Positions 2,646-28,346 are shown, numbered from the stretch's first letter. The stretch: 28,453 nucleotides of DNA from Macrostomum lignano (GCA_002269645.1 NIVC01005019.1:1-28453); one strand, 5' to 3'. Numbers and translations: made by a program. Notes: generated from the letters alone by a model not told the origin.

Positions 2646-3209
2646 CCTCAAATGAGCCAGACAGGCAATTACTTGATAAAGTCAAACCAAGTTTAACAAT
2701 TCTGATCTTTACTGCATGGAAGTCAATGTTCAAGCATGATTTATTCGTATTGAAATGGACCCACTCTGTAAGGCAGCTGTCTAGAAAGAGTGAAGCAAGC
2801 GATCTATTAAATGCTCTACTTGATCTATAGGCGCAGATTAGCTTCGGGTTTGATCAGAGATCCCGGGAATTTCAGTCCCAGCGCAAAAAATACCCGCTTT
2901 TTGTATCTTTCTGTCACAAAGATGCTGAGAAAAAAAGGCTAACAAACAAGCTAGTTGCTTGTCTTTAATTCAAGTGCAATTAGTTTTATATATGACTTTT
3001 CCAGGCAATTCAAATTATCTGTCCGAGTCAATGAGTTCATTGTAATCAAACAGCTGTCAGTTTTCCTTTCCTAGTGACTTTGATGGACTCTTCGACGATC
3101 TGAAATTGTGGATTAAGATTGACAAATTTTCATGCTAAAGATAGAACAGCGGATGTCTGAAAAAACTATATGATGATCAAAAGATAGATAACGTGCACAC
3201 TGGCATTCA

Positions 3210-3979
3210 GATGAAAGATGGGCTGACATGCAAGCAAGTAGATGGAAGACAGACTGACATGCAAGCAAGTAGATGGAAGACAGACTGACATGCAAGCAAG
3301 TATAATAGATGGAAGACAGACTGACATGCAAGCAAGTAGGTGGAAGACAGACTGACATGCAAGCAAGTAGGTGGAAGACAGACTGACATGCAAGCAAGTA
3401 TAATAGATGGAAGACAGACTGACATGCAAGCAAGTAGATGGAAGACAGACTGAAATGCAAGCAAGTAGATGGAAGACAGACTGACATGCAAGCAAGTAGA
3501 TGGAAGACAGACTGACATGCAAGCAAGTAGATGGAAGACAGACTGAAATGCAAGCAAGTAGATGGAAGACAGACTGACATGCAAGCAAGTAGATGGAAGA
3601 CAGACTGACATGCAAGTAGATGGAAGACAGACTGAAATGCAAGCAAGTAGATGGAAGACAGACTGACATGCAAGCAAGTAGATGGAAGACAGACTGACAT
3701 GCAAGCAAGTAGATGGAAGACAGACTGACATGCAAGCAAGTAGATGGAAGACAGACTGACATGCAAGCAAGTAGATGGAAGACAGACTGACATGCAAGCA
3801 AGTATAATAGATGGAGGACAGACTGACATGTAAGCAAGTAGATGGAAGACAGACTGACATGCAAGCAAGTAGATGGAAGACAGACTGACATGCAAGCAAG
3901 TAGATGGAAGACAGACTGACATGCAAGCAAGTAGATGGAAGACAGAATGACATGCAAGCAAGTAGATGTAGACATGCAG
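3210..3979. repeat. 31-bp minisatellite GATGGAAGACAGACTGACATGCAAGCAAGTA, about 24 copies, some with a TAATA insertion
   Basis: Read directly. It explains the three overlapping minus-strand ORFs at 3113-4030. Confidence 0.97.
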
Positions 3980-4033: not shown

Positions 4034-4314
4034 TCAGAGGCCTGTCGCGTAGACTTCGTTTCTCCAGTGATTCCCGCAAGTCTGCTTTTTGTCCCCAGCA
4101 CACGCTAGTGAGCACTCGGAGTCTGCAACTTGGCCATGCCGGCCAAAGGTGTTGCCACAATGGCACCAATCAGTAGCTTGCACTCCTGCAAACCGATACC
4201 CGCGTTCTTTGCAGAGCGACACGCAGTATTCTGGTTTCACATAATTCGATTTCTTGAAAAATTCGTCTAGATCTCTTTCAGCACTGTCCACAAAGCAGCC
4301 AAGTCGCATGAGGC
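4034..4314 (-). CDS. Exon 2 (terminal) of a small secreted WSC-domain protein
   Basis: Translation LGCFVD..RDL..YCVSLC..GYRFAGVQ..WCHCGN..ECSLACAGD..TCG..WRNEVY has the 8-Cys WSC pattern. A phase-1 acceptor ttttcacag|GC precedes base 4314; TGA at 4034-4036. Confidence 0.85.
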
Positions 4315-5422: not shown

Positions 5423-8382
5423 TCAAGGCTACTCCATGCGACGAACTCTGGAAAATAGTCTGCACGATCGGTGATTCCACAGTCCATATGTGCGTCGACT
5501 CTGGTAGTCAAGTAACAATTTTGCCAGTAACCATCGTAGAGCAAGCCGGATTGCACATGGTTGACGCGGACATTCGATCACTCAAAGTTTTCGGGGGAGC
5601 TTCAGTTTCCGTACGATGCATGGCTAAGGACGTCACGATTGAGCTGAGAAACGGCAAAACGGCATGCGGAGACATATATGTCGGGGACCCATCCAGTCAA
5701 GCCATTTTGGGAATAAATTTTATTCGTGCCTTCAACCTATTGACGGTAGACGAATTTCTGTGCCATCCAGTGCAGTGTGATGAAAATTCAAGATTCCAGG
5801 CCAGCTTTCGCCTGAAGGACGGGGCCTCTACCGATGGAATGTGCTTTCCTGCCAGATCCCTTCCGTTCTCAATTAAAACTTTGGTTGAACTGGAGCTGAA
5901 AAGACTGGAAAGTGCAGGTATCATCTACCCAGTTCACTCGCCTAAGGTATCGTGCCCTATTATTCCTGTGTTGAAACCAGAAGGATCAAAGAGACCCATT
6001 AGACTGTGTGGAGACTATTCAGTCACTCTCAACAGACTGATCGACTGAGATCGATATCGACTGCCAACTTTGAAAGAAATCCTTCAAAAGATCCCAAATT
6101 CGAAAGTGTATTCAGTGCTCGACCTCGAAGACGCATTCTTGCAGATTCCCCTAACGCCAGAAAGTCAGGGTCTTACGTGTATTTCCACCCACGTAGGACA
6201 TTTTGCCTTCCGCAAGTTACAATTTGGGATATCGGCAGCACCACTGATATTTCAGGAAGTTATGGATATCTTGCTCAAAGGAATACCAGGCACTGCTTCT
6301 TATCAGGACGACATCATTCTAGGCACTGAAACAGTGGAGCAGCATCGACAGATCCTGGTGCAAGTCAACGAAAAACTGAAAAAGCATGGATTCAAGATCA
6401 ATGAGCGTAAGACTCAGGAGTGCAAGAAAGAAGTCACATTTCTGGGATTTCTCCTCCGAGATGGGAAACTTTTGCCTGATCCGGCAAGAGTGGAAGCTCT
6501 ATCCAACTTGTCAGAGCCAAAAGACCGGGATCAATTGAGAAGTGCTATATGCACCTTAAGACACTACGGGATTTTTTGTCGGAACTTCTCTATGATCGCC
6601 AAGCCGCTCTATTACCTCCTAAAGAAAGGGGTTCAGTGGAAATGGACTGTCGTTCACTCAAGTGCGTTCTCCCAACTGAAAGCTGCTGTAACGGAAGGTC
6701 GAATCGTTTCTTATGATATAAAAAGGCCGTTGTTTCTAACCTGCGACGCTTCTCAGAGTGGAGTCGGATTTGTGCTGTCCCACGACACGAACCAAAAAGA
6801 AGTTGTATGGCTGGGGAGCAGAGTTTTGACCAAGGCTGAGGCCAACTACGCTAACATTGAGCGGGAGGCTCTTGCAATTATCGAGGGTGTAAAATATTTT
6901 CATCAATTTCTGGCAGGCCGTCATTTTACAATCATCTCTGATCACAGACCTTTGCAGTACATCTTCTCTACAACGAAAGTTCCTGACCGAGTTTCTGCGA
7001 GACTCCAGAGATGGGCATTGCTGCTCAGATCCTATGACTACACTGTCACTTACTCAAAAGGAGACACCATGCTCGCAGCAGATACTCTGTCCAGAATTCC
7101 TTCAACAAACGCTTCTACTTCGTTTTCAAATTTTGATGTCAATCTGCTGGAGGTAAACTCTCTCGTAGAATTTTCTTCTTCTGGGACAATTCTTCGGCGT
7201 GTCGCCAACACCAGAGACCCTGAAATTGATACTATCAAGAAGTTTGTTACTCAAGGTTGGCCAAGCTACATTTCTAAACAGCTGCTTCCGTACACCAAAT
7301 CCAAGGCGGAATACTCCATTCAAAACGGGATTCTGTTCAAAGGGGTCCGAATCGTGCCTCCAAAGTCCATGCGCAGAGAAATTCTTCAAATTCTTCACGA
7401 GAATCATCCGGGCATTGTGCGCATGATCATACTAGCTCGAGAGTACTTCTGGTGGCCTTACATTGACGCCCAGATCAATAGCTTCGTTCAAAGGTGTCCT
7501 TCCTGCCAACTAAATTCGAGAAAGCGAACAAATGCAAATCTGCATTCATGGGAGGATTCAAAGTTCTTCTTCGAACGTGTTCATCTGGACATAGCATACT
7601 TCAAGGAGAAACACTTCTTGGTTCTCATCGACTCCTTCTCTCGGTGGATTGATGTACATCAGCTGTCAAATCTGACAGCCAACTCTCTTATTCCAGCATG
7701 CAGACGAACATTTAAGTACATGGGACTTCTAACGTGCATTGTGACTGACAATGGAACCAATTTTCGATCAAAAGAGTTCGCAGAATTTCTCAAGAAGAAT
7801 CTAATTAACCATGTCCTAACACCACCTGGTCATCACCAGTCAAATGGGATTGTGGAGAGAGCTATCCAAGAGTTGAAAGTGACTCTGAAGCAGAACAGTA
7901 ATGACATAGGTTCCGAATGTGAGAAGGTGTTGATATCATTCTGCCTTTCGAAGAACACTACACCGAATTCCGAAGGAGCGATTCCTGCTGCACAACTGTT
8001 AATGCAACGCCCAAGAACGCGCCTCACTGCAACCTTTACAGAATGGGACAAACCGCTAACTACCCCAATTCCTGTCTACATCAACGTAGAAGGAAAGTCA
8101 GACAAGGTCCCAGAAGAAATCCAAGGACTTCATGGATCAAATACCTACTTGGAAAGCAAAGGACGGGTTGTCCATGCATCTGATGCAACGCCAAGGACTA
8201 CAGAGAACTCACAAGAGATTACCTCGCCTAGACCTGCCCATGTTGGCAGCAGCAAGGAGAAGGAAGTGGAGACTACGACTCCTGCTGAAGTGGAGACAAC
8301 CAGCGATCAAAGTCCCGAGTACCAAGTTTCTCGTCGAAGTCAGAGGCTCCGAAAAGCCCCTGATTGGCTGACCTATTTCTGA
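5389..8382 (+). pseudogene. pol: pol (protease, RT, RNase H, integrase) with an in-frame TGA at 6046-6048
   Basis: Protease VDSGSQV; RT DLEDAFLQ, FGISAAP, YQDD; RNase H CDASQSGVG, EREALA, SDHRPL; integrase HxxHPG..CPSC, HLD, TDNG, NGIVER. The frame reads LID*DRYRLPT across the stop. Confidence 0.93.
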
Positions 8383-8860: not shown

Positions 8861-9814
8861 CGAGGGGCATTCAAAAAGTTTTGGCAACTGCATATGCAGA
8901 TATACTTTGGTTCAAGCAAAATGCACTAAATTTTAGGAATGTCTTTAGTAACATGCCTGATACCAACGTATAAACTTTCAGCTCAATAGCTTCACCCGTT
9001 ATTGCACAATTCACAGCTAACCATAACTAAGTTTCAGCTTCTGACATAATATGGAAAATATCAGCTCAGAAAATGCGCGCTTCTACATCTTCATACGCGT
9101 ACAACTTGGAGAAAATGCCACCAAAATTCATGCCGACTTAGCACAGGTGATAGGGGATCAAGCTCCATCTTATAGAACTGTTGCGCGATGGATTGAGGCT
9201 TTTGGCGCCGGCAGGAGCAGCCTCAGTGACAACCCTCGATCTGGGAGGCCGAGCACAGCCGTGACCAAGAGCAACATTGACACTGTGCAATCGCTGGTGG
9301 CTGAGGACCCAAACATTTCTGTTGCCATACTGAGCCAGACACTTGGCATATCTGATAGCAGCGTTTTCACCATCCTGCATGATCAGCTGGGTCTCAGAAA
9401 AATCACAGCTCGTTGGGTGCCACATCAGCTCACTGAGGAGCAGCGCCAGGAGCGGGTTCGCTGCAGTCAGGAGTTCTTGCGCTGCTTTGGTTCTGGCGGC
9501 ACCAAGCGCCTCTCTGACATCGTCACATCGGACTTAGCTCCGTGCGACTTCTGGGCCTTCCCGAAATTGACGGAGAGGCTGGCTGGGCGCCGATTTCAGA
9601 GGCCGCAAGACCTGGCCCGCGCTATCAATTCAGAGTTGAGGGCATTCACTGAATCGGAGTACCGTGGCGCCTTTGATTCGTGGATACGGAGGCATCAGAA
9701 GTGCATAGAGCGCGGCGGAGACTACATAGAAGGACTGTAAACCCTTACTTTTAGAATAATAAGCTTCCACTAGATTTTAGTCGCCTGTTGCCAAAACTTT
9801 TTGAATGCCCCTCG
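8861..9814 (+). mobile_element. Internally deleted mariner (Tc1/mariner) element, 954 bp
   Basis: Perfect 28-bp TIRs (CGAGGGGCATTCAAAAAGTTTTGGCAAC) with TA duplications at 8859-8860 and 9815-9816. Confidence 0.96.
9051..9740 (+). CDS. Truncated mariner transposase, 229 aa: DNA-binding domain intact, catalytic core deleted in frame
   Basis: HTH region, PRSGRP and WVPHQL motifs are present. IVT joins directly to SDLAPCDF at ~9527/9528, removing the GDE...DNA segment. Confidence 0.9.
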   Translation: MENISSENARFYIFIRVQLGENATKIHADLAQVIGDQAPSYRTVARWIEAFGAGRSSLSDNPRSGRPSTAVTKSNIDTVQSLVAEDPNISVAILSQTLGISDSSVFTILHDQLGLRKITARWVPHQLTEEQRQERVRCSQEFLRCFGSGGTKRLSDIVTSDLAPCDFWAFPKLTERLAGRRFQRPQDLARAINSELRAFTESEYRGAFDSWIRRHQKCIERGGDYIEGL

Positions 9815-15945: not shown

Positions 15946-16390
15946 CTGGACTTGTGCGATAACGACCTGCTGCCGGCTCTTTTCGCCCAGCTGCCCCGCC
16001 TGCGCTGCCTCCGCCTCACTAACTGCAGCCGCCTGACCCGCCAGGCCTGAGCGAATCTGCGAGACCTGCAGAGACTCGCCGCCTCGCCGCTGCCCGACCT
16101 GCTCGAGCTCGTGATTTACAATTGCAGCGATTCCAGCATCCAGCCTCACTGATGAGGCGGTGGCAGACCTGTGTGCCAGTCCGGTCGCCAGGGGCCTGCG
16201 GTGGCTCAGTCTGCACCCGTGCAACCAGCTGACCGCCGCCTCTCTCTCCAGCATCGCCAGCGGCTGTCCGTGGCTGTCCGGGCTGTGCCTCTGGAAGTGC
16301 CGGCGCATCGGTCCGGCGGACCGCGATGCCATTAACTCGGCCTATGCGAACTGTGTCAGGGTAGTTCTGTCGCTCTCCTGCCCTGATTGA
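15946..16390 (+). pseudogene. FBXL cluster copy 1: orphan last-exon LRR fragment
   Basis: Homologous to 21218-21684 and 26202-26545. TGA at 16048-16050 where paralogues have TGG, and a 7-nt duplication (TCCAGCA) at 16132-16145 shifts the frame. No F-box exon was found upstream. Confidence 0.85.
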
Positions 16391-17123
16391 GCGCTTCGGC
16401 ACCGCCAAAGTATGAATATAGACATTCATTCTCTTCAATGAATGCTTACTGCCATTTTTAACGGAAATTTTGTGTTTATTGACTTCGATCCCGCCACAGG
16501 GAACCACTAATGACGCTTTGCAAGTTGACCTCGGTTTGTAAGCGGCGCACACTAACACAACAGTGCCAGTTTTGTAGAAGCTGTAGGCCTTAGATTCAAC
16601 TTTTTATATTTTATTTTTTATTATTAGCTGTACTCTGTCTGTTTATTGTGACATTTCACACGTTTTGTGATAAACCTTTACTTTTATTCAGTGTTCTACT
16701 AGCACGTTACTCGTGCAGAAGTTATTGTTTGTTTTACTCTTGATCTATTTTTGGCCTTAAAGTCTCTAAATTAGTACCAACCAATGAAAATGCGACTCCA
16801 GTCTCAGCCAATAGGAAGCAGTGGTGTACAAAATAACCATCTCCCAGTTCGATAGAATGAAAAATTTGTATATCTGGATAATAAACAAACACTTGCTAAG
16901 CCAAGCAGGAAGCTTCGCTCACTTTCCTCGCCCTCTTGCCGTCGCTCGCTCTTGCACATTTACCGGGTCGGACTGTTGGTAGCAGAACCTCAGAGTGAAC
17001 CCAAAATACTCACAAGCTTGGAAGCTTCTTACCTGGAGTGCCTTCTTATATTACACTTTTTTGTCATTCAACGCGACTAAGATTGAAATTAGCAAACACA
17101 GCGGACTGTGAGTAACTAGCCAT

Positions 17124-17856
17124 ATGATTGGATCGTCATTTGAATCCAATATTTCACTCCACTTGTATGCATTTCAATTGCAGCACCTTCAGCTCAACGA
17201 AGGAGACTGCTTCATCGAGTGGCTGCCGGATGAGCTGCTCACGCAGATCCTGTCCGAGCTGGACCAGACCAGCCTCGGCCGGTGCGCTCAGCTGAGCAGG
17301 CGCTGGCAGCGACTCGCCACGCAGCCGCGGCTGTGGCGCAAAATCCGCATCGGCTGCCGGAACCCCGGCATGACCCCCGGTCTGGCGCTCTGCCTGTCCG
17401 CCCAGCTGGCCGGCGCAGTGCTGGAGCTGCACGCGGACCGGCTGGCTGCTGACGAGCTCGTGCACCTGCTCAGCGGCTCGCCCGACTTGCAGAGCCTCAC
17501 CATTGATGGCATCAGCGGCCCTCCCGGATCCGAGAGCCCGCTGGTGACGCTCAGTCGCTGCTGCCGCCGCCTACGGAGCCTCCGCCTGCTCCGCTGCGGC
17601 GGCCTGCTGTCAGCGCACTCGCTGGCGCAGCTGGGGGCCGGCTGTCCGCATCTGGCGCACCTGGCGCTGGATTTCTCTTCCTGCGCCAGCCTCGGAGGCT
17701 CCAGGGAAGAGTTCTCAACGCTGGCCTGCGGCCTGGAGTCCCTAAGCCTGGCCTTCTTCAGTGCTCACGCTGAGCAGACAGTTGAGCACCTGGCCTTGAC
17801 AATACCCGTCTGCAAGCGCTTGAGCCGCTTGAGCATCGGCTGCAGCCGAGAGTCAG
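17124..17856 (+). CDS. FBXL cluster copy 2, F-box + LRR exon (true start uncertain)
   Basis: F-box IEWLPDELLTQILSELDQTSLGRCAQLSRRWQRLA..LWRKI, then LxxLxL..C repeats. Phase-1 donor TCA G|gtaagt at 17857. Confidence 0.85.
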
Positions 17857-18177
17857 GTAAGTCTCTCACTGAGGTGTGAGCATCCGTCCAAATGGAAACC
17901 CCAGCTCCGCCAGGCGGCTTATTACGGCTGTCGGTTGGCATGCAAACAGAAGACACCGCGATTTTGTTAGACAATTTCTCTTCCCAGTGGCTCAGAGAGC
18001 TGTGCAACCAGATGGGATAGGGGCCACCTAGCTGGAAGCCGCACAAGTCCCTCCTGATGCTGCGAGAGCTCACAGTTGTGAAGAGAAAGAGGGACTCGCC
18101 CTCTTTGCAGACAGAACTTTGGTCGCCAAACAGTCCACGGTCCACTGGCCACAACACTAAATTTAACTGAATTTTAC

Positions 18178-18488
18178 TGCACGGTCACACGAGAGCGAGA
18201 GAGACCAAGAGCGGAAAGGCCCGCGCTTTAAATAGCAGAGGGGAAGAGGGGGGAAACGGGCAAGCCAGCGGACAGCCGCGACACCCCACCTCGCTGGCCA
18301 GCCAATCACGTGCCGCCGCGGCACAGGGCAGATAAGAAACTGAGGGCTGGGCTGGGCGCAAGACCAACTAGGGAGAGGAGTGGCCAGGCCAGAGTGAGGC
18401 TCAAGCCCCCCAAACCCCGGTCTGACCCTCGGGCCAACCAGAGCGAGGTAGAAAGGAAGGGAGCAAGTGGACACAGCATACCACAACA
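18178..18488. mobile_element. Possible solo LTR in the copy-2 intron
   Basis: TG...CA ends, flanks TTTAC/TTTAG (4/5 TSD match), and a minus-strand TATTTAAA followed by a TC-rich run. Boundaries are ambiguous. Confidence 0.3.
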
Positions 18489-18654
18489 TTTAGTTATTCG
18501 AATAAACGCCCAAATATAGCCAAGGTAGCGCAAAACACAGAAATGGCTTCTCTTGTTAACTTATTTTGATGAACGGAATTTACAGCAGCCCTTGAATTTT
18601 GTGCAGAGCAGCCTGATTTTCCATATCCGGCCCTGTTCACTCCGCAGTGCTGCT

Positions 18655-20663
18655 TTCTTTTCTTCACTCCGACCTCCGACCGCCCGCAGGCGGCCGGGCG
18701 GGGCCGGGTGGCCGCCAGGGTCGTCAATGGGCGGCTCGGTCCGACCCACCCTCTTGAGGTAGTCACAGATGAGGGCGCCGCCACCCTCGAGAACGTCGTT
18801 CCAGGAAATGACCACCCCGCCCCAGGTGCGGATGCGGGCCTGGTGGTGGCAGGGGCAGTAGAGCATAGGATGATCGACCGAGTCCGGTTCTCCGCAGTCG
18901 GCGCATCGGTCGTTCTAAGCGAGGCCGAACCGAAACAGGGTGTCGCGAGTCAGGGGGGATTTCTTAGTGCGGATTTGGCTGACCGTCACCTGGCCCCACC
19001 TGGGAAGGTCATCGTGGCCTGGCGTCGGAGTCAGGTGCGGATGCGTGCGGTCCCGCGCAGTTCTCCAATTGGACAGTACGTGGCGGACGGCATTTTTGGC
19101 GGAGGCCTGGGAAAGTTGCGCGGTGTTCGGTTCCAATTCTGCAGCTTCGCGGGCGAGGGCGTCCGCCGCCTCGTTACCAGCAATGTCCGCGTGGCCAGGA
19201 ACCCATTGGAAGTGGAGCCTGGTCTGAGCTGGGAGGTCGGTGATGAGTCGCCAGATCGTGAGGACGAGCGAATTAGTAGAACGGTACGGGCCTTGGTTGA
19301 TGGCCTGAAGGCCTGATCGTGAGTCGGTACAGATGTGAACCGAGAGCCGCGGGTTGCCGATGGTGTCGAGGGTTTGACGTAGGGCTCTTATCGCTGCCTC
19401 GATGGCGACCAATTCAGCGTGGGTGCTACTGCACCACTTTCCGGCTTGCTGGCGGATGGACATGCGGAGTGCCTCGATGGATTCGGCAGTGAGGAGAGCA
19501 CCTCCGCCGGCAGCAGTGCCGTCCGGGCTAACGGAGCCGTCCGTCCAGATGGTGCAGTCGGCGCTCGGTAACAGGGCCAAGGTGGCTTCTGCCGCAGCAC
19601 GGCGGGCCTCCAGTGGGTCGGATCTTTTGGTCGGCCGGGCGAGATCGGTAGCGATGGTGATCGCCTGGTCGGCTAAGTGCCACGGCGGGAGAGCCGGGTA
19701 GTGCTGGCGGTCTATGTCTCCGATGTGGATACCGGCAAGGCTCAGGAGCCACAGGCCTACTCGTCTGAAGCATGGCCGGTGACTCAAGACGATGTCTTCA
19801 TCGTGGAGGTCCGTGTCGACGGGCCGGTCCGCTGGGCCTTCACGCTCTTAAGCTTCGTGGGCTCTGTAGCGGAGGCGAGGGGCGACTTGAGCTACCATAA
19901 GGGTACGGGCCGGGTCGTCGTCCGGTAGGCCGAGCAGGCGAATGAATTCGTTTGCGGCTAAGGTTTTGGCTCGGATGCTGAGGGCTGGTAGTCCGGCCTC
20001 GGCGAGTAGGCAGCGTCGTCTCGTGATGCCCAGACAGCCGGTAATAATTCTGGCGCATTTGTTTTGCTCGGCCTCGAGTTTGAGGCGCGCCGTTGGTGCC
20101 GCATGATTGAAGTATAGTGCCGCTCCGTAGTCAAAAACCGACCGTACGTAGGCCATGTAGGCCGCACGTAGGGTGCGACGGTGGGCGCCATAGCTCTTGC
20201 CAGCGAGCACTTGGATGCATCGACGTCGGTCGGCCATTTTCTGTCGGACCATCTCAGTGTGTGGCGAAAAGGTGAGTTGATCATCCAGCTTGAGTCCTAG
20301 GAATGTCGGCGTGGGTCATAGGCGAGGTCGTGGTTTTCAAGTCGCAGAGCGGGTCGGACTTTGCCGCCGCACTCGTAGGATCGAGGGTAAAGGTTGAGTA
20401 GGCACACTTGGAGTGGCTGAGGCTCACTTTCCATTTACGGGTCCAGGCAGCCGCTTGGTCAAGGGCGGGTTGCAGTTTGTCGGCGCAGGCAGCGAGGGAG
20501 CGTCCTGTGGCAAGTAGCGCGGTATCGTCTGCGAAAAGTGAGCGGTGTACGTTCTCGGCCATCTCGGCATCAATGTCGTAGGCATATATAAGCCAAAGGA
20601 GGGGGGCGATCACGGATCCTTGCGGGAGGCCGTCCGTGAAAACTCTCCAGTTCGAGGTCGCAC
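18655..20663 (-). mobile_element. 5'-truncated I-group (Ingi/I/Loa-like) LINE with RT, RNase H and C-terminal CCHC, 2009 bp
   Basis: GLPQGSVIAP, LFADD, IWTDGS, HAELVAI, CTDSRS, FQWVPGHADIAGNEAAD, CADCGEPDSVDH..YC. 7-bp TSD TGCTGCT (18648-18654, 20664-20670), GAAGAAAAGAA tail, in-frame stops at 19848 and 18915 plus frameshifts. Confidence 0.93.
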
Positions 20664-20680
20664 TGCTGCTGCAGTTCCAG

Positions 20681-21124
20681 TGCTGCTGCAGCTGCTGCTC
20701 CGCATGCCCCGCCTGGCCGACCTGACGGTCCGCGAGCTGCGCTTCACCGACAAGCTGGCCGGTCAGCTGGTCGCTGCAGCTGAACGAAGCGGTGGCTTCG
20801 AAAGTCTCGACTTTCGCAGCTGCCAGCAGTTGACCGAGCGCGGCCTGGCCGCCCTGCTCAGCGCCTGTCCGAGCCTGCGGCGTCTCCGCCTGTCCGACTG
20901 CCGGGCCTTAGGCGGCGTTGGCTACCGCCTGGCTGCTGCCCGCCTGCCGCCCGGCCTCGAGCAGCTGCGGCTCACAGGTTGGGCCTGGCCTGGCCTGGTC
21001 GAGGCGGACCTGGCGCTGCCGCTGCCGAGAGGACTCCGCGAGCTGGAGCTGCTGCTCAACCAGCAGGGCTCGCCCGCCGGCCTCTGCGGGCTGGGGCTGC
21101 GAGCTGGCCTGGCCGGCTGCCAGG
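20681..21124 (+). CDS. FBXL cluster copy 2, middle LRR exon
   Basis: Phase-1 acceptor ttccag|TG and phase-1 donor CAG G|gtaaga. It aligns with copy-4 exon 25308-25733 (VLLQLLLRMPRLADL vs GLAHLPSKMPNLTDL). Confidence 0.75.
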
Positions 21125-21217
21125 GTAAGAGGCTAATCTGATTAAGCAGCACCTGAGGCGCAGGTGGATTTCAGAGACAAGGAAACAAGTCTGATTCACC
21201 CACCCACCAACCGCCAG

Positions 21218-21684
21218 AGCTGACCAAGCTGACGCTGGACTTGTGCCACAGCGACCTGCTGCCGGCTCTGCTGACCCAGCTGCCCCGCCTGCGCTGTCTT
21301 CGCCTCACTGACTGCCGCCGTCTGACCCGCCAGGCCTGGGGTCTCACCGCCTCCTCGCCTGACCTGCACGAACTAATGCTGCTGCAGTGGTCCAGCCTCA
21401 CTGATGAGGCGGTGGCCGACCTATGCGCCAGTCCGGTCGCCAGGGGCCTGCGACGTCTGTGCCTGTCGCCCTGCTTTCAGCTGACTCGCGCCTCTCTCGC
21501 CAGCATCGCCAGCAGCTGCCCATGGCTGACCCGCCTGACCCTCAACGGCTGCCGTCGAATTTCCCAAGCGGATCTGCAGTTGGCGCAGCCGGCATTCGAG
21601 CAGCGGGTTGAGCTCATCATCGGCAGAGAGGCGGAAGCGGCTGCCCAGAAGCTGCAGTTTTTATCCGATACGGAACTCGATTGA
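21218..21684 (+). CDS. FBXL cluster copy 2, last LRR exon
   Basis: Acceptor ccgccag|AG; cysteine-containing LRRs (LTDEAVADL, CFQLTRASL, CPWLTRLTLNGCRRI); TGA at 21682-21684. The spliced model is ~547 aa and open. Confidence 0.85.
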
Positions 21685-22474
21685 GGATTGGGAGAGAAGG
21701 CCTGCCCGCCAACCCGAGTTTGAGCACGCATTTTTATAAAAATACACTTCGCAAATACTTAGCAATGGTGTTTGATCGCTCTGCGCAACACATTTTTGCA
21801 AGCTCTTTCTAATTCGCGTTTCTTATTTACAAACCTCACTACTGACAGTAGAACTGAGGCGAGAAAATATCTATCCAAGATTCAACACTATCGCTTTGCT
21901 CTCTGGAGCTTCAGGTCCTCAGAACTCTTGTAGGCGAGCTGAAAATTACAGAGCAGAGAGGGCAAAGTGCAAGGTTGGCAAATGCATTTGATCCATGATA
22001 ACTCGCATGATAACTCTGAACACTGTCCGCAGCCTTGAGACCGTTCGAAGGTCCTGTTTGACATCCGCCCAAACGATGGCGCCAATGGAAGCGACCGGTT
22101 GCGACGGTCCGAGACGGAAGTCTCGTCGACTTGGATCCAGAACCCGCTGTGAGTGAGCCAGAAATTCAGCTGTCTGATCTGATTGATGTGCTGACAAGTG
22201 CAGGAAACGGCGATGCTGGTTCGAGATTTTAGTTGACGGGGGTACTGAGCGATTTCTAGACCTTAAAAAAGCTTGTCAATTTTTTGAGAAAAATCGTGCC
22301 GCACACGAATCGTGGATTGGGCCCGTCGCGAACCTATGACCGAATTTTTATTCGATTATAAGCATCGACCCCGATTAGGTAGATCTGCGGACTGCCCCTA
22401 CAACTGACTGCACCTTCCTTCAGCCTATCCTGAACAGTTCCTCGGCAGTCCCGAAAATCCCCTCGTCGAGGCCG

Positions 22475-23045
22475 GACTGCCCGATCGAGCAACTTGCTGT
22501 TGAGCTGCTCACGCAGATCCTGTCCGAGCTGGACCAGACCAGCCTCGGCCGGTGCGCTCAGCTGAGCAGGCGCTGGCATTCAGCGTCCATACGAAGCTAC
22601 ATCGGACCAGACTGGCCCCCTCATCCACCGACTGTCCGTGTGGCTGTCCGGAAACCTGGTGGAGCTGCACGCCAGCCGTTTGGCAGCTTTTGACTTTGTG
22701 GCCCTGCTGAGCTCCTCGCCCAAGCTGGAAAGCGTCAATTTAACATCGGTCAATCCAGCCTTTTGTGTGGAGAACCCATTGAAGACCTGGGCCGCTGTTG
22801 TCTCGCCCCGCTTGCAGAGCCTCCGCCTGATCAAGTCTCAGTCGCTGCTCTCTGATCACTCGCTTGAGAAGCTTCAGACCGGCTGTCCGCGCCTGTGGCA
22901 GCTGCAGCTGGGCTTCTACTTCCTGCCAAAATTGTTTTCCATGGAGCGCATCGCCGCCCTGGTCGGCGGCCTGAGTTGTCTCAGTCTGCGCTTGAACTTT
23001 CCATTGCGTGCCTGGAGCGTTTTCAGCCGCTTAGGCCCAGCCTGA
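22475..23045 (+). pseudogene. FBXL cluster copy 3: F-box + LRR exon, frameshifted, no downstream exons seen
   Basis: F-box identical to copy 2 over 78 nt. A ~41-nt deletion at 22577/22578 removes QRLATQPRLWRKIR and shifts the frame. The LRR part resembles copy 2. Confidence 0.85.
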
Positions 23046-23130
23046 GCGTTGCTACTCAGTGTCACAAGGACAAAAGTAGTGAGCAGTTCCTTTTCCGCAT
23101 GTTTCATTTCACACCCGGGGGTTGGGCCGC

Positions 23131-23184
23131 AGACCAGTGGTCCGTCGCGGCGCTCTGATAGGCCAGCGGCCCAGGCTCGATTCC
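23131..23184 (+). other. tRNA-like Pol III promoter (A box/B box), possible SINE head
   Basis: AGACCAGTGGT (A-like) and GGCTCGATTCC (B-like) at tRNA-like spacing. No clean cloverleaf. Confidence 0.3.
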
Positions 23185-23815
23185 AAGTGCAGTTACTTTA
23201 ACCTAAATTGTAAACTCGGCTTAGCTCTGCTCATACAATTAACTTCCTTGAAGGCCACCCCCCAATGCCACAGTGAAGTGTACATGCCTAACCATAAATA
23301 AAGTTAGTTAGGGCCGCTGTACACTCCTGTGTGAGTTTGTGCCTGTGCGTATGGCTGCGTACGTAATCCTTGCACTTGTGTGCCTGCTCAGGGGAGTCGT
23401 CGGAATGGGCAGCAATGCCTCTCGTCGGTTCTGTGACAATGTCGCTTAAAGTGTGCCAGGCTGCACACAACCCCATTGCCTCTAATTAAAAAATGCTCCC
23501 ACACATCTATCGGACTTTTTAAAAGTGCAGCTGGTGGTTTGTCCGTCAAGAGAGCTACTGAATGCAGCCGCAATCCCAGCCATTACCCAAGGGACGAAAT
23601 AGAGGGGAATGCGAGCGAGTGGGGCATGCACCGTGACCCCAATCCCAGTCTATCCCTGTACAGCAGGCACACTGCACCGGGCTGATAGGGTCCCACAAGG
23701 GAAACCAATGCTAGTCCAGGCTATTGGTGCTTTTCAGAGTCAAAAATGAACAGGTTGAACAGGTCGGCTGCAAACTCTGATCTCTATTGCAGCAGTTTTA
23801 CTGACTGAAAGCTCC

Positions 23816-23923
23816 ATGCTTCATCATCATCAACATGAGCAGCAGCAGCAGGATGTCAGCCAGGTGTCCTTGCAACAAAACAACTCCATGAGCCTCCAGC
23901 CGCCACCTGCCGCAGGCTCCTGC
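23816..23923 (+). CDS. FBXL cluster copy 4, exon 1 (His/Gln-rich N-terminus)
   Basis: ATG, 36 codons, donor TGC|gtaagt. A 73-nt intron joins it in phase 0 to the F-box exon. Confidence 0.7.
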
Positions 23924-23996
23924 GTAAGTCCCCAGCTCCCCAGCCAAGATGCTTCCGAATTAACGATGCACATCTTGCAACTTTCATTCGCTACAG

Positions 23997-24647
23997 AGCC
24001 TCATCAGCAATATCGAGCAGCTGCCAACAGAGCTGCTCACGCAGATCCTGTCCGAGCTGGACCAGACAAGCCTCGGTCGGTGCGCTCAGCTGAGCAGGTT
24101 CTGGCTGGAGCTCACCTCTCAGCCGCAGCTGTGGCGCAAAATCCGCATTGACAGCCGCACCGCGGATCCCGAGCTGGCGCAGCGCATCGGCGACTGGCCG
24201 GGTGGCCGCGTGCGCGAGATCTCGGCGGTCAGGCTGACAGCTGAGCACCGGCTGCCCCTGCTGCTGGCCGCATCCGCCAGTCTGACCAGCCTCAGCCTAA
24301 AGGAGATGCAGGGCGACCTCGTATTGAAGGAGGCCGGCCGCAGCTGCCAAAATCTGCGCGAGCTGCGTCTCGAATGCTGCAATGAGATGCTGTCCTTCGA
24401 CTCGGTGAGCGGCCTGCTGACCAGCTGTCCGAGCCTCTCGCTGCTGCAGTACACTGGCAGCCTGTCCGATCTGTTCGCACCGTCTGACGAGCACCGGGTG
24501 GCCCCTCTGTTCCACTCGCTGGTGAGCCGACTCTCCAGTCTCAAACTGCACCTGCTGATGACGGAGAGCCTGCCGCCGCAGTGGTTCGCTGCTCTGCCCG
24601 AGTGCCCCGGCTCGCCAGCCTCTACGTGAGCATTGCGGACTGGAGAG
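23997..24647 (+). CDS. FBXL cluster copy 4, exon 2 (F-box + LRR), with an apparent 1-nt deletion in the C run at ~24605-24608
   Basis: Acceptor ctacag|AGC; F-box IEQLPTELLTQILSEL. Restoring one C gives CPRLASLYVSIADWR-G|gtgagc, matching copy-5 CPRLESL..DWL-G|gtgagt. Confidence 0.8.
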
Positions 24648-24657
24648 GTGAGCACCT

Positions 24658-25257
24658 GATCTCTACCTGTCCGGAGTCGGACAGGTTTGACTTCAGCGAT
24701 CTCTGCCTGTCCGGAGTCGGACAGGTTTGACTTCAGCGATCTCTGCCTGTCCGGAGTCGGACAGGTTTGACTTCAGCGATCTCTGCCTGTCCAGAGTCGG
24801 ACAGGTTTGACTTCAGTGATCTCTGCCTGTCCGGAGTCGGACAGGTTTGACTTCAGCGATCTCTGCCTGTCCGGAGTCGGACAGGTTTGACTTCAGCGAT
24901 CTCTGCCTGTCCAGAGTCGGACAGGTTTGACTTCAGCGATCTCTGCCTGTCCAGAGTCGGACAGGTTTGACTTCAGCGATCTCTGCCTGTCCGGAGTCGG
25001 ACAGGTTTGACTTCAGCGATCTCTGCCTGTCCGGAGTCGGACAGGTTTGACTTCAGCGATCTCTGCCTGTCCAGAGTCGGACAGGTTTGACTTCAGCGAT
25101 CTCTGCCTGTCCGGAGTCGGACAGGTTTGACTTCAGCGATCTCTGCCTGTCCAGAGTCGGACAGGTTTGACTTCAGCGATCTCTGCCTGTCCAGAGTCGG
25201 ACAGGTTTGACTTCAGCGATCTCTGCCTGTCCGGAGTCGGACAGGTTTGACTTCAGC
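24658..25257. repeat. Intronic 40-bp minisatellite, 15 copies, each with an 8-bp-stem hairpin
   Basis: GATCTCTG-CCTGTCCG-GAGT-CGGACAGG-TTTGACTTCAGC; no spacers. Confidence 0.97.
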
Positions 25258-25307
25258 CTGACTGACAGATACTCAATGATCATCCCTTTCAAATGACTGC
25301 TTTTCAG

Positions 25308-25733
25308 GCCTGGCTCACCTGCCCAGTAAAATGCCGAACCTGACCGACCTGTCCGTTCTTACCTCTCAACCTGCATCTCAGGCAAACCTGCAGCTGGGCA
25401 GGCTGCCTCATCTTCAGCGAGTGAAGATCTGCGACTTCTCCTTTCAGTCGTGGAGCTTGGATGCCATCCTGTCGGTGCTGCGAGGCGTCCGCGAGCTTTG
25501 GAGCTTCATGTTGGATGGCTGCGTGCACCTGACCGGCCAGCAGTACCGGCAGGTGGTGCGGGCCCTGCCAGCCCGCCTCACAGACCTTCGCTTTGGTGGC
25601 TGCTTCAGAAACAGAGTCGCTGAGGTCGACCTGCAGGAGCCGCTGCCACCTGGCCTGAGGCGGTTGCAAGTTGATGGATTCAAATGGGGAACGTCTGGAG
25701 TGCAGTTTGCTAGTGCTCTGGCCAGCTGCTCAG
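25308..25733 (+). CDS. FBXL cluster copy 4, exon 3 (LRR)
   Basis: Acceptor ttttcag|GC and donor TCA G|gtgagc, phase 1-1; open frame. Confidence 0.8.
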
Positions 25734-26108
25734 GTGAGCGGGTCTGTTGCTGGTGTGGGCTGGTGGCTGCTCAGGTGAGCGGGTCTGTTGCTGGTGTGGG
25801 CTGGTGGCTGCTCAGGTGAGCGGGTCTGTTGCTGGTGTGGGCTGGTGGCTGCTCAGGTGAGCGGGTCTGTTGCTGGTGTGGGCTGGTGGCTGCTCAGGTG
25901 AGCGGGTCTGTTGCTGGTGTGGGCTGGTGGCTGCTCAGGTGAGCGGGTCTGTTGCTGGTGTGGGCTGGTGGCTGCTCAGGTGAGCGGGTCTGTTGCTGGT
26001 GTGGGCTGGTGGCTGCTCAGGTGAGCGGGTCTGTTGCTGGTGTGGGCTGGTGGCTGCTCAGGTGAGCGGGTCTGTTGCTGGTGTGGGCTGGTGGCTGCTC
26101 AGGTGAGC
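25725..26108 (+). repeat. 41-bp minisatellite, ~9.4 copies, spanning the exon 3 splice donor
   Basis: GCTGCTCAGGTGAGCGGGTCTGTTGCTGGTGTGGGCTGGTG; CAG|GTGAGC occurs 10 times from 25731 to 26100. Confidence 0.97.
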
Positions 26109-26201
26109 ATTCAGACCACTGCACAGAGGCGATCGGGTCAATGTCGAGTTGCTAACGCTACAAGCGTAACACGAGTTTATTGTAACAAATTTTCATATCA
26201 G

Positions 26202-26578
26202 GCCTGACGCACCTGGCTTTGGCGGTCTGCAGCGACGACCTGCTGCCGGCTCTGCTCGCCCAGCTGCCCCGCCTGCGCTGCCTCTACATCCACGACTGCA
26301 GCCGCCTGACCCGTCAGGCCTGGGTGAACCTGCTAAACTTGTGGAGCCTCGCAGTTTCCCTGCCTGACCTGCAGGAGTTTTCCGCTGTCAACTGCAGCGA
26401 GTCCAGCCTCACTGATGAGGCGGTGGCCAACCTGTGCGCCAGTCCGGTTGCCAGGGGCCTGCGGCGGCTCCACCTGTCTCAGTGCCGCCAGCTGACCGCC
26501 GCTGCACTCGCCAGCATCGCCAGCGGCTGCCCCTGGCTGACCCAGGCGATAAGGCAGCAGCCTTTGAGTCCTCAATAG
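26202..26578 (+). CDS. FBXL cluster copy 4, exon 4 (last LRR exon, C-terminus apparently shortened)
   Basis: Acceptor ttcatatcag|GC; homologous to 21218-21684 up to CPWLTQ, then diverges. Confidence 0.8.
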
Positions 26579-26942
26579 TACGAGCGTACGTGTATTTTTA
26601 GCATAAAGCCGGCCTTCAAATGTTTTCTAAGAAACAGATTTTCTCATCAATCAAATTCAGTTGTTCATTGTGCATATCAAGAAATACACAAAATAAACTC
26701 TTATGTTGTGATTTTTTATACGCTAGTAATGTTACTGATGAATGTCTCAAGATAAGTAGGCAGATGTGTCCTCTAGCTGTTTATTGAATTGAAAGGTCAT
26801 TTTTCTCCATCATTACTTCATCATTACTCCATCATGTGACAGACGCGCAGCCTTTGAGAACAGAGTATGAGACCTTTTTTAATGAATTCATAGACTGAGT
26901 GATCCAGATAGAAAAAATGACACAGCATATACTGCTTGAAGT

Positions 26943-27597
26943 ATGCCGCCTGCAACGCAAACTTCAGATCAGCTCTGCATGGAACAGCTGCCAGAGGAGC
27001 TGCTCACGCAGATCCTGTCCGAGCTGGACCAGACCAGCCTCGGATTGTGCGCTCAGCTGAGCAGGCGCTGGCGGCGGCTCGCCACGCAGCCGCGGCTGTG
27101 GCGCAAAATCCGCATTGACGGCCGCACCGCAGATGCCGAGCTGATGGAGCGGCTCAGAGACTGGCTGGGCGGCAGCGTGCGGGAGATCTCGGCCTGCGGG
27201 CTGACAGCGGAGCAGCGGCTGCCACTGCTGCTGGCCGCATCCGCCAGCCTCACCTGCCTCAGTTTGAAGGACATTGGCAGCGAATTTCTGGTGACGGAGG
27301 CCGGGCGTAGCTGCCCCAGTCTGCGGGAGCTGCGCCTCGAAGACTCCGGTAAGTTGCTCTCGGTCGAGTCGCTGAGCAGCCTGCTGGACGGCTGCCCGCG
27401 CCTCTCGCTGCTGGAAGCCACTGGCGAGTTGTTCGGAGGCCTTCAGAGCGAGCAGCTGCAGCAGAAGTTCCACCAGCTGGCCGCCCGCCTCACCCGCCTT
27501 TCCCTCGACTGCCCCCGGGCCGCTGAAGTCATCCGCAACCTGCCGGAGTGCCCGCGTCTTGAAAGTCTTTGCTTTCTGCACTACCGAGACTGGCTTG
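26943..27597 (+). CDS. FBXL cluster copy 5, F-box + LRR exon (further exons not seen in the window)
   Basis: MEQLPEELLTQILSELDQTSLGLCAQLSRRWRRLATQPRLWRKIRI plus LRRs; phase-1 donor CTT G|gtgagt at 27598. Closest to copy 4. Confidence 0.88.
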
Positions 27598-28007
27598 GTG
27601 AGTTGCTGCTGAGTTGCTGGGCATTTTTTAGTAAAATGTCTTTGATTTATAAGGGGGCCCGCTGAAAATGTTACCGTGACAAGAATCGCTAGAGTGATTG
27701 CAAACTACTCACTAGTGACTCTGGGGTGAGTCTTGTGACTTTTTAAGGACTCAGACGACTGAAACGCGACAGGAGAGGCGGCTGTTGAGTCACGAACGCA
27801 TCACGTGAGTTGCAGAATTGCAAGAGTCTCGACAAAGTCTTTCAAGAGTCATTGTGTTCTACAAGTCAAGTAGACTAAATGCGTTGCTTTACATGCAAAT
27901 TCGAATGCGATTCTAGTTGACGCAGATGCGTTTTAGACGCAACTCAGTGATTCTAAAGCGACTCAAGCGCGCCCCAGATACAATTCTACGTCGCCAGAAG
28001 TCATTAC

Positions 28008-28346
28008 AGAAGCGCCCCAGAGTCACTATAGAGCGCCCAGAGTCACTATAGAAGCGCCCTGAGTCACTATAGAAGCGCCCAGAGTCACTATAGAAGCGCC
28101 CCAGAGTCACTACAGAAGCGCCCCAGAGTCACTATAGAAGCGCCCCAGAGTCACTATAGAAGCGCCCAGAGTCACTATAGAAGCGCCCCAGAGTCACTAC
28201 AGAAGCGCCCAGAGTCACTATAGAAGCGCCCCAGAGTCACTTTAGAAGCGCCCCAGAGTCACTATAGAAGCACCCCAGAGTCACTATAGAAGCGCCCCAG
28301 AAGCGCCCCAGAGTCACTACAGAAGCGCCCAGAAGCGCCCAGAGTC
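28008..28346. repeat. 21-22-bp minisatellite GAAGCGCCC(C)AGAGTCACTATA, about 15 copies
   Basis: Read directly; an inverted partial unit lies at 27713-27726. Confidence 0.95.

Follow-up and report, generated by a model that had tools for sequence, protein, structure and literature searches.

The window analysed here, a 28,453-nt stretch of the Macrostomum lignano genome, carries a tandem cluster of genes encoding an F-box followed by leucine-rich repeats (LRRs), in which the DNA of the F-box is nearly the same in copies whose LRRs have diverged almost to saturation at synonymous sites. We consider that interlocus gene conversion has probably homogenised the F-box segment, a reading derived from comparison of the gene copies with one another. 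These copies, numbered 1 to 5 in a first-pass annotation of the window, are here named A, B, C, D and E. They were compared with family members at the loci L001 to L005 (L1 to L4 being short for the first four) and L007 (contig NIVC01001936.1), and with L006 (contig NIVC01001389.1), a second version of the window locus, the two versions being taken as independent assemblies.

Near-identity of the F-box at synonymous sites

Copies B and C (17231-17308 and 22501-22578) show no mismatch over 78 nt, and over 17231-17349 (119 nt) B differs from E at 6 positions and from D at 13. The first-pass annotation had reported the same identity for copies 2 and 3, and its figure of about 5 differences in 119 nt for copies 2 and 5 is close to our count. 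Among B, C, D, E and the gene of the unlinked locus L001, all pairwise values of Nei-Gojobori synonymous divergence (dS) fall within 0-0.15 in the 25-codon F-box core, whereas in the LRRs of the same exon they are 0.57-1.25, i.e., near saturation. Similarly, at positions encoding the same amino acid, 85-100% of the codons are identical in the F-box versus 36-67% in the LRRs (Fisher p from 10−6 to 10−2 for nearly every pair in the homogenised group), which bears out the earlier claim that the identity reaches synonymous sites. The codons common to the F-box copies include the non-preferred ACG, TCC, GCT, AGG and CGG.

The distant members of the family, L002 and L003, keep most of the F-box residues but not the codons. 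Between L002 and the group, 29-31 F-box residues are the same and only 45-48% of the codons are identical, which is the background level; a constraint at the nucleotide level is therefore not family-wide, since L002 keeps the amino acids but uses background codons. Moreover, the low dS of the F-box is a local property of an old family, because introns and intergenic DNA cannot be aligned between paralogues. The F-box cores, as well as a 35-nt deletion found in C, agree between the window and L006. In addition, L001 (17225-17279) and L005 (12797-12851) each have an isolated relic of the F-box core, 55 nt long and 91% identical to B, at the place where the next tandem gene would start, and both end (..GCGCTGGC) at the base where the deletion of C begins (window 22577).

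Tract ends, mosaic structure and discordant trees

The near-identical tracts detected between gene pairs, where L007X and L007Y are genes of L007, are the following:

B and C: 78 nt, 0 mismatches
B and L004: 76 nt, 0 mismatches
B and L007Y: 119 nt, 2 mismatches
L007X and L007Y: 103 nt, 2 mismatches
E and L007Y: 283 nt, 8 mismatches, running through the first LRR; the 5′ flank cannot be aligned, and identity drops to about 60% downstream

Tract length thus varies by pair (76-78, 103, 119-130 and 283 nt), and the pairs include genes on other contigs. The clearest mosaic is copy E, which resembles B in the F-box (16:4 informative sites) and D in the LRRs (51:142), with a maximum chi-square p < 0.0002 and a Fisher p of 4 × 10−6. 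Neighbour-joining places E next to L007Y as its sister, with about 2% divergence up to the first LRR, and past this point E groups with D (83% bootstrap) and lies about 0.37 from L007Y, whose E-like first 283 nt are joined to an LRR body of the type found in the family protein P0009. By a Sawyer-type permutation test, 31-32 consecutive polymorphic sites of the core are concordant in each of the pairs B-C, B-L004 and C-L004 (p < 10−4).

The low F-box dS, the pair-specific tract ends, the discordant trees and the codons of L002, taken together, make interlocus gene conversion the best explanation for the homogenised F-box, and one that we hold to be probable. Separate trees and dS values for each segment had been proposed as checks in the first-pass annotation, and both favour the non-reciprocal exchange that it had suggested: dS is near zero in the F-box against near-saturated LRRs, the tract ends vary, and E changes its partner after the first LRR.

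Several observations weigh against this explanation. Maximum chi-square mosaic tests with B, C, L001 or L004 as the query were not significant (p 0.19 for B), and a faster evolution of the F-box in D could contribute to the mosaic result obtained for E. In several pairs the core without any mismatch begins and ends at the same two positions, -21 and +55 from the anchor, which counts against conversion because a fixed functional nucleotide element would produce the same pattern. The rise in GC content at third codon positions (GC3) that is expected from biased conversion is weak and inconsistent, with values of 0.74-0.91 in the F-box and 0.66-0.86 in the LRRs, raised in L001 and L003 and not in D and L004. 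The F-box segment is short, so that its tree is poorly resolved, and the donor of a conversion cannot be told from the recipient. Finally, the classic signature of concerted evolution consists of copies that are identical within a species and different between species, and the comparison involves about ten copies from a fragmented assembly of M. lignano alone.

Homogenisation beyond the F-box and selection on the genes

In every copy the last exon, too, contains islands of near-identity, among them the one that encodes SLTDEAVADLCASPVARGLRRL, with 70-83% identical codons within the group versus about 55% with L002. Homogenisation therefore extends past the Skp1-binding part of the protein, into the first LRR in E and L007Y and into the last-exon islands in all copies. 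The first-pass annotation had pictured a fixed Skp1 adaptor with LRRs free to vary, of which the homogenised F-box stands, but the freedom of the LRRs does not extend to these regions.

Comparison of the window with the second version of the locus, L006, gives 9 synonymous against 4 non-synonymous differences for gene B (omega 0.17, binomial p 0.002) and 13 against 10 for gene D (omega 0.26, p 0.0015), so that both are under purifying selection at this level. The pseudogene C has 2 synonymous and 8 non-synonymous differences (pN/pS 1.36), plus an indel, and exon 1 of E has 3.5 and 7.5 (ratio 0.75, not significant). Among paralogues, D and E are the sole pair with unsaturated LRRs, and their omega of 0.68 is compatible with relaxed constraint; the strand codons of the concave LRR face are few. 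The low omega of B and D argues against ongoing diversification, and neither these values nor the D-E LRR omega show diversifying selection in the cluster. The description of the cluster as a fast-evolving repertoire is not upheld by this purifying selection, nor by the age of the LRR types (see below).

Family identity, predicted fold and extent

The motif LPxELLxxILxxLDxxSLxRCAQLSRRWxxLxxQPxLW is present in B, D and E, and the Pfam families F-box-like (PF12937) and F-box (PF00646) match B and E with E-values of 10−14 to 4 × 10−10. A phmmer search against PDB sequences retrieved FBXL2 (5 × 10−17) and also SKP2, FBXL17, FBXL5 and MAX2. The AlphaFold2 model of gene B, built from the family alignment (predicted local distance difference test 80, predicted template modelling score 0.78), is an LRR solenoid of about 17 repeats with alternating strand and helix, and Foldseek placed FBXL2-SKP1 (7 × 10−13) and TIR1-ASK1 (7 × 10−12) among its best matches, along with COI1-ASK1 and D3-ASK1. 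On the basis of sequence and model, the genes are FBXL-type putative substrate adaptors of SKP1-cullin-F-box (SCF) ubiquitin ligases, with predicted binding to Skp1. An SKP1 gene exists in M. lignano, and Mlig-SKP1 is required for spermatogenesis (PMC9740662).

In a profile search of 1.84 billion representative proteins, all strong matches were from M. lignano (about 17-20 clusters at 50% identity), as were the only close protein relatives. Beyond this species the search retrieved generic giant LRR proteins, with a best E-value of about 10−5 outside Macrostomum. No orthology to a named FBXL orthogroup, such as FBXL2/20, was found among these strong matches, and literature searches on the locus tags and on Macrostomum F-box/FBXL genes found no description of the family. 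As far as the databases show, the family thus appears to be specific to the Macrostomum lineage, as had been proposed.

The other family loci are likewise tandem. L004 has an extra last exon upstream and L001 and L005 have the F-box relic downstream, and a third tandem cluster at L007 (6500-16300) contains two F-box exons, one of them frame-broken, and three last exons in 10 kb. The LRRs that follow the F-box are of two types, represented by B and C (type I) and by D and E (type II), with relatives elsewhere in the genome (P0003, P0004 and P0005 for type I; P0001, P0002, P0008 and P0009 for type II). This division, already noted in the first-pass annotation, is a sharp one: within a type the LRRs directly after the F-box can be aligned (about 81% over 449 nt for D and E, with BLAST), whereas across types blastn gave no alignment in this region. 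The two LRR types are old, not recent.

Some annotated M. lignano models (P0007 and P0012) read the F-box DNA in a wrong frame (..AAHADPVRAGPDQPRPVRSAEQALAA..; compare window 23816-24151), and they have no Pfam F-box because of this translation. Such models reflect indel errors of annotation or assembly within the family.

Organisation of the cluster

Of the five copies of the first-pass annotation, only B and D are whole multi-exon genes; E is represented by the 5′ exon of a third gene, and A and C are relics. Family genes consist of three or four exons: in some a separate start exon comes first, the next, a large one, encodes the F-box together with the N-terminal LRRs, and the other two contribute the middle and the C-terminal LRRs. 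The elements of the cluster in the window are:

15946-16340, plus strand: copy A, a solitary last-exon relic (C-terminal LRRs) without upstream exons and with frame breaks
17183-17856, plus strand: gene B exon 1, F-box and type-I N-terminal LRRs (acceptor ttgcag, donor G/gtaagt; Pfam F-box)
18655-20680, minus strand: 5′-truncated non-long-terminal-repeat (non-LTR) retrotransposon with partial reverse transcriptase and RNase H (Pfam RVT_1 and RNase_H)
20681-21124, plus strand: gene B exon 2, middle LRRs
21218-21684, plus strand: gene B exon 3, C-terminal LRRs (stop at 21682-21684; Pfam LRR_4)
22480-23045, plus strand: copy C, a pseudogene first exon with an F-box core (22501-22578) identical to that of B
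23816-23923, plus strand: gene D exon 0, start codon and His/Gln-rich sequence, matching P0011 residue for residue
23997-24647, plus strand: gene D exon 1, F-box and type-II LRRs
25308-25733, plus strand: gene D exon 2, middle LRRs
26202-26578, plus strand: gene D exon 3, C-terminal LRRs
26943-27597, plus strand: gene E exon 1, ATG, F-box and type-II LRRs (donor G/gtgagt)

Alignment of copy A with the last exon of B and with that of D gives 73-79%, and the relic has an in-frame TGA at 16048-16050, which is also present in L006. Gene B (17183-21684; F-box core 17232-17306) is open throughout as a model of about 540 residues. In the window only, the non-LTR retrotransposon interrupts its exon 2 after 7 nt, between the two copies of the target duplication TGCTGCT (18648-18654 and 20681-20687), and L006 has the empty site. 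The end of the element places CAG immediately before the duplicated start of exon 2, so that correct splicing of gene B would still be possible. An alternative exon 2 acceptor at 20675 (reading VPVLLQ) was dropped in favour of 20681, given P0160 (NCBI PAA68542.1, BOX15_Mlig029821g2) and the empty site of L006.

In copy C, 35 nt of F-box helix 3 are deleted after 22577, which shifts the frame, and the lesion is common to L006; its type-I LRR reading frame is found at 22578-23045. Only L006 (13893-16440) has a further 2.5 kb downstream, comprising tandem repeats and a last-exon copy that represents the 3′ end of C, and this segment maps between window positions 23100 and 23103.

The spliced model of gene D matches P0011 (UniRef A0A1I8HH27) residue for residue, except at a site with one C fewer in the window. 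There, the C-run at 24605-24608 in exon 1 is one base shorter than in L006, causing a frameshift and a TGA at 24627. A reading as pseudogenisation was rejected, as the frame is intact in both L006 and P0011; the shorter run is probably a mistake in the assembly or a lesion private to this version. A deletion of 118 nt at about 26540, flanked by TGGCTKACCC microhomologies, also takes away the normal C-terminal end of D in the window, and L006 (19443-19562) has neither this deletion nor the frameshift. The remainder of gene E lies beyond the window; L006 carries it at 21650-22469, in a form that lacks intron 2.

L006 starts at window position 7203 and is collinear with 7203-28453 at 96-99.5% identity. 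Copies B and D are annotated there as hypothetical F-box proteins, P0160 is encoded on this contig, and B matches P0160, which begins with HLQLNEG, at about 99%. The locus is therefore already present in the M. lignano annotation as hypothetical F-box proteins. Exact look-ups of reading frames from the window among public assemblies returned no record, and no DNA is recorded for P0001 and P0003. The two versions differ by the 2-kb retrotransposon, the 2.5-kb indel and the 118-nt deletion; together with the two relics, these differences display the birth-and-death evolution that had been suggested.

Minisatellites in the introns

Three tandem repeats are found in introns of D and E:

24658-25257, plus strand: 40-nt repeat, 15 copies, gene D intron 1
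25725-26108, plus strand: 41-nt repeat, 9.4 copies, gene D intron 2, starting in the last 9 nt of exon 2
27994-28346, plus strand: 22-nt repeat, 14 copies, gene E intron 1

The intron 1 repeats of D and E differ from each other, and neither was found at the family loci L001-L005. Each unit of the 41-nt repeat reproduces the 5′ splice site CAG/GTGAGC, and paralogues on other contigs (L001 13701-15354; L005 10425-10793) have the unit at 98-100% identity, with a diverged version in L003 (11349-12551). The unique part of gene D intron 2 cannot be aligned with paralogues, and gene E has lost intron 2 entirely. The identity of the 41-nt donor-site repeat could reflect either homogenisation or a role in splicing.

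Other features of the window

The window as a whole is eukaryotic and repeat-rich. Its GC content climbs to about 60% from 15.9 kb on, where the co-oriented F-box and LRR reading frames begin. The region upstream of the cluster contains:

267-2644: 28-nt satellite, about 90 copies
3209-3968: 31-nt satellite
4034-4309, minus strand: WSC-domain exon, which also adjoins the cluster in L006
4585-8382: LTR retrotransposon (gag, protease, reverse transcriptase-RNase H-integrase)
9051-9740: mariner-like helix-turn-helix reading frame

Alternative explanations

Protein-level purifying selection with strong codon bias might be thought sufficient for the F-box identity, with no copying involved. GC3 is indeed high (LRRs 0.78, F-box about 0.9), and the F-box residues occupy canonical Skp1-contact positions. 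However, the codon usage of the family predicts about 12 identical codons out of 25, against 24-25 observed (the probability that all 25 are identical is about 2 × 10−9), rare codons are shared, and the same degree of codon identity is seen neither at LRR positions with conserved amino acids nor in the L002 F-box, which makes the chance of this account very remote. That repeat collapse or consensus polishing made the F-boxes identical is barely credible: small errors do exist, as in the homopolymer frameshift of gene D, which is absent from the other assembly, but all four F-boxes recur in L006 (NIVC01) with unchanged cores, C again having its deletion, and the flanks are unique. A different possibility, which we find distinctly unlikely, is that the F-box core is kept as a nucleic-acid element (a small-RNA target, a cis-regulatory RNA or a splicing signal) by selection on synonymous sites. 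In its favour, the identical core is delimited alike in several pairs and is exact in five copies on three contigs, the 55-nt relics of L001 and L005 stop at the base where the C deletion starts, and the intronic 41-nt repeat is also identical between paralogues with no coding need. Nevertheless, the predicted folds of the core are not convincing (five folds: z between -0.8 and -2.1 for the sense strand, +0.3 for the antisense), an Rfam scan of the whole window gave no match, the distant L002 and L003 do not retain the core nucleotides, and longer tracts with other ends exist (119 and 283 nt). There is a slender chance that the 75-nt core, and perhaps the 41-nt donor-site minisatellite, would be nucleic-acid elements for which conversion is only the means of maintenance. 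An example, to which we give no better prospects, would be a common small-RNA target co-regulating the whole subgroup, by analogy with the microRNAs that target conserved motifs of plant NLR and F-box families.

The remaining alternative, suggested in the first-pass annotation, concerns the purpose of the cluster and could hold alongside conversion: a defence or arms-race repertoire, with diversifying selection on the LRR surface and a fixed Skp1 adaptor. The family is lineage-specific, tandem and structurally unstable, the D-E LRR dN/dS is fairly high (0.68), and there is an analogy with the expanded F-box families of nematodes and plants, which is established knowledge. Against this stand the purifying selection on B and D between locus versions (p about 0.002 in both cases), the old age of the LRR types, the conserved LRRs of the last exon, and the size of the family, whose 17-20 clusters are far below the nematode and plant repertoires. 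We regard this possibility as unlikely, if not negligibly so, and a role of the cluster in defence is speculation.

Proposed explanation and comparison with known systems

In the explanation based on gene conversion, the cluster would belong to an old Macrostomum-specific FBXL family, in which the introns, the intergenic DNA and most LRR codons of the paralogues have become saturated with changes. Non-allelic gene conversion would repeatedly overwrite short stretches, both within the cluster and between clusters on other contigs, chiefly the 75-130 nt encoding the F-box, sometimes the first LRR and, less so, the last-exon islands. Constraint at the protein level would keep these stretches similar enough for conversion to go on, and the more diverged parts of the LRRs may in this way have escaped it, while deletion, retrotransposon insertion and pseudogenisation would account for the turnover of the cluster. 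This is an ordinary kind of gene-family evolution.

The proteins resemble the metazoan FBXL2, SKP2/FBXL1 and FBXL17 and the plant TIR1, COI1 and MAX2 in having an N-terminal F-box followed by a curved, Cys-containing LRR solenoid, but differ from them in the longer solenoid (about 17 repeats), the lack of orthology to a named FBXL, the three to four exons and the arrangement in tandem clusters. In the F-box superfamilies of nematodes and plants a conserved F-box is combined with a variable substrate domain, for which an arms race has been proposed, and work by Thomas from 2006 reportedly provides an example of such expanded superfamilies. The M. lignano family shares with them the lineage specificity, the tandem arrangement, the abundance of pseudogenes and an F-box that is far more conserved than the substrate-binding part. 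In contrast, it is small (about 20 clusters), B and D have recently been under purifying selection, and its F-box is conserved at synonymous sites, pointing to copying beyond protein constraint alone.

A closer parallel for the pattern of homogenisation is given by the protocadherin clusters, which in PMC1852091 (Noonan et al. 2004, as cited there) are described as undergoing region-restricted gene conversion while the remainder is divergent. In both systems, tandem paralogues have one part of an exon that is near-identical, including synonymous sites, and another that is divergent. Here, however, the tracts are shorter (75-283 nt), cross between the clusters of different contigs and carry a weak GC3 signature, and the homogenised part is the adaptor domain rather than the membrane-proximal ectodomain. 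Among F-box genes, the neighbouring primate FBXO6 and FBXO44 show a GENECONV-supported tract that includes the F-box domain (PMC3984280). Whereas that case involves a single pair and a single event, the M. lignano family forms a network of at least 8 copies with nested tracts. What is notable here is the sharp, short core tract and the exchange between clusters on different contigs.

Implications

No new mechanism is opened by these findings, but they provide, for animals, a clean case of concerted evolution restricted to one domain in a family of ubiquitin-ligase adaptors, under the probable reading that the F-box is homogenised by gene conversion. For users of the M. lignano genome, several annotated models of the family are truncated or read in the wrong frame, and a retrotransposon and two deletions, with effects on coding exons, distinguish the two versions of the locus. 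The F-box is unsuitable for inferring relationships among the genes of the family. A Macrostomum-specific FBXL family, present in several tandem clusters, is now documented.

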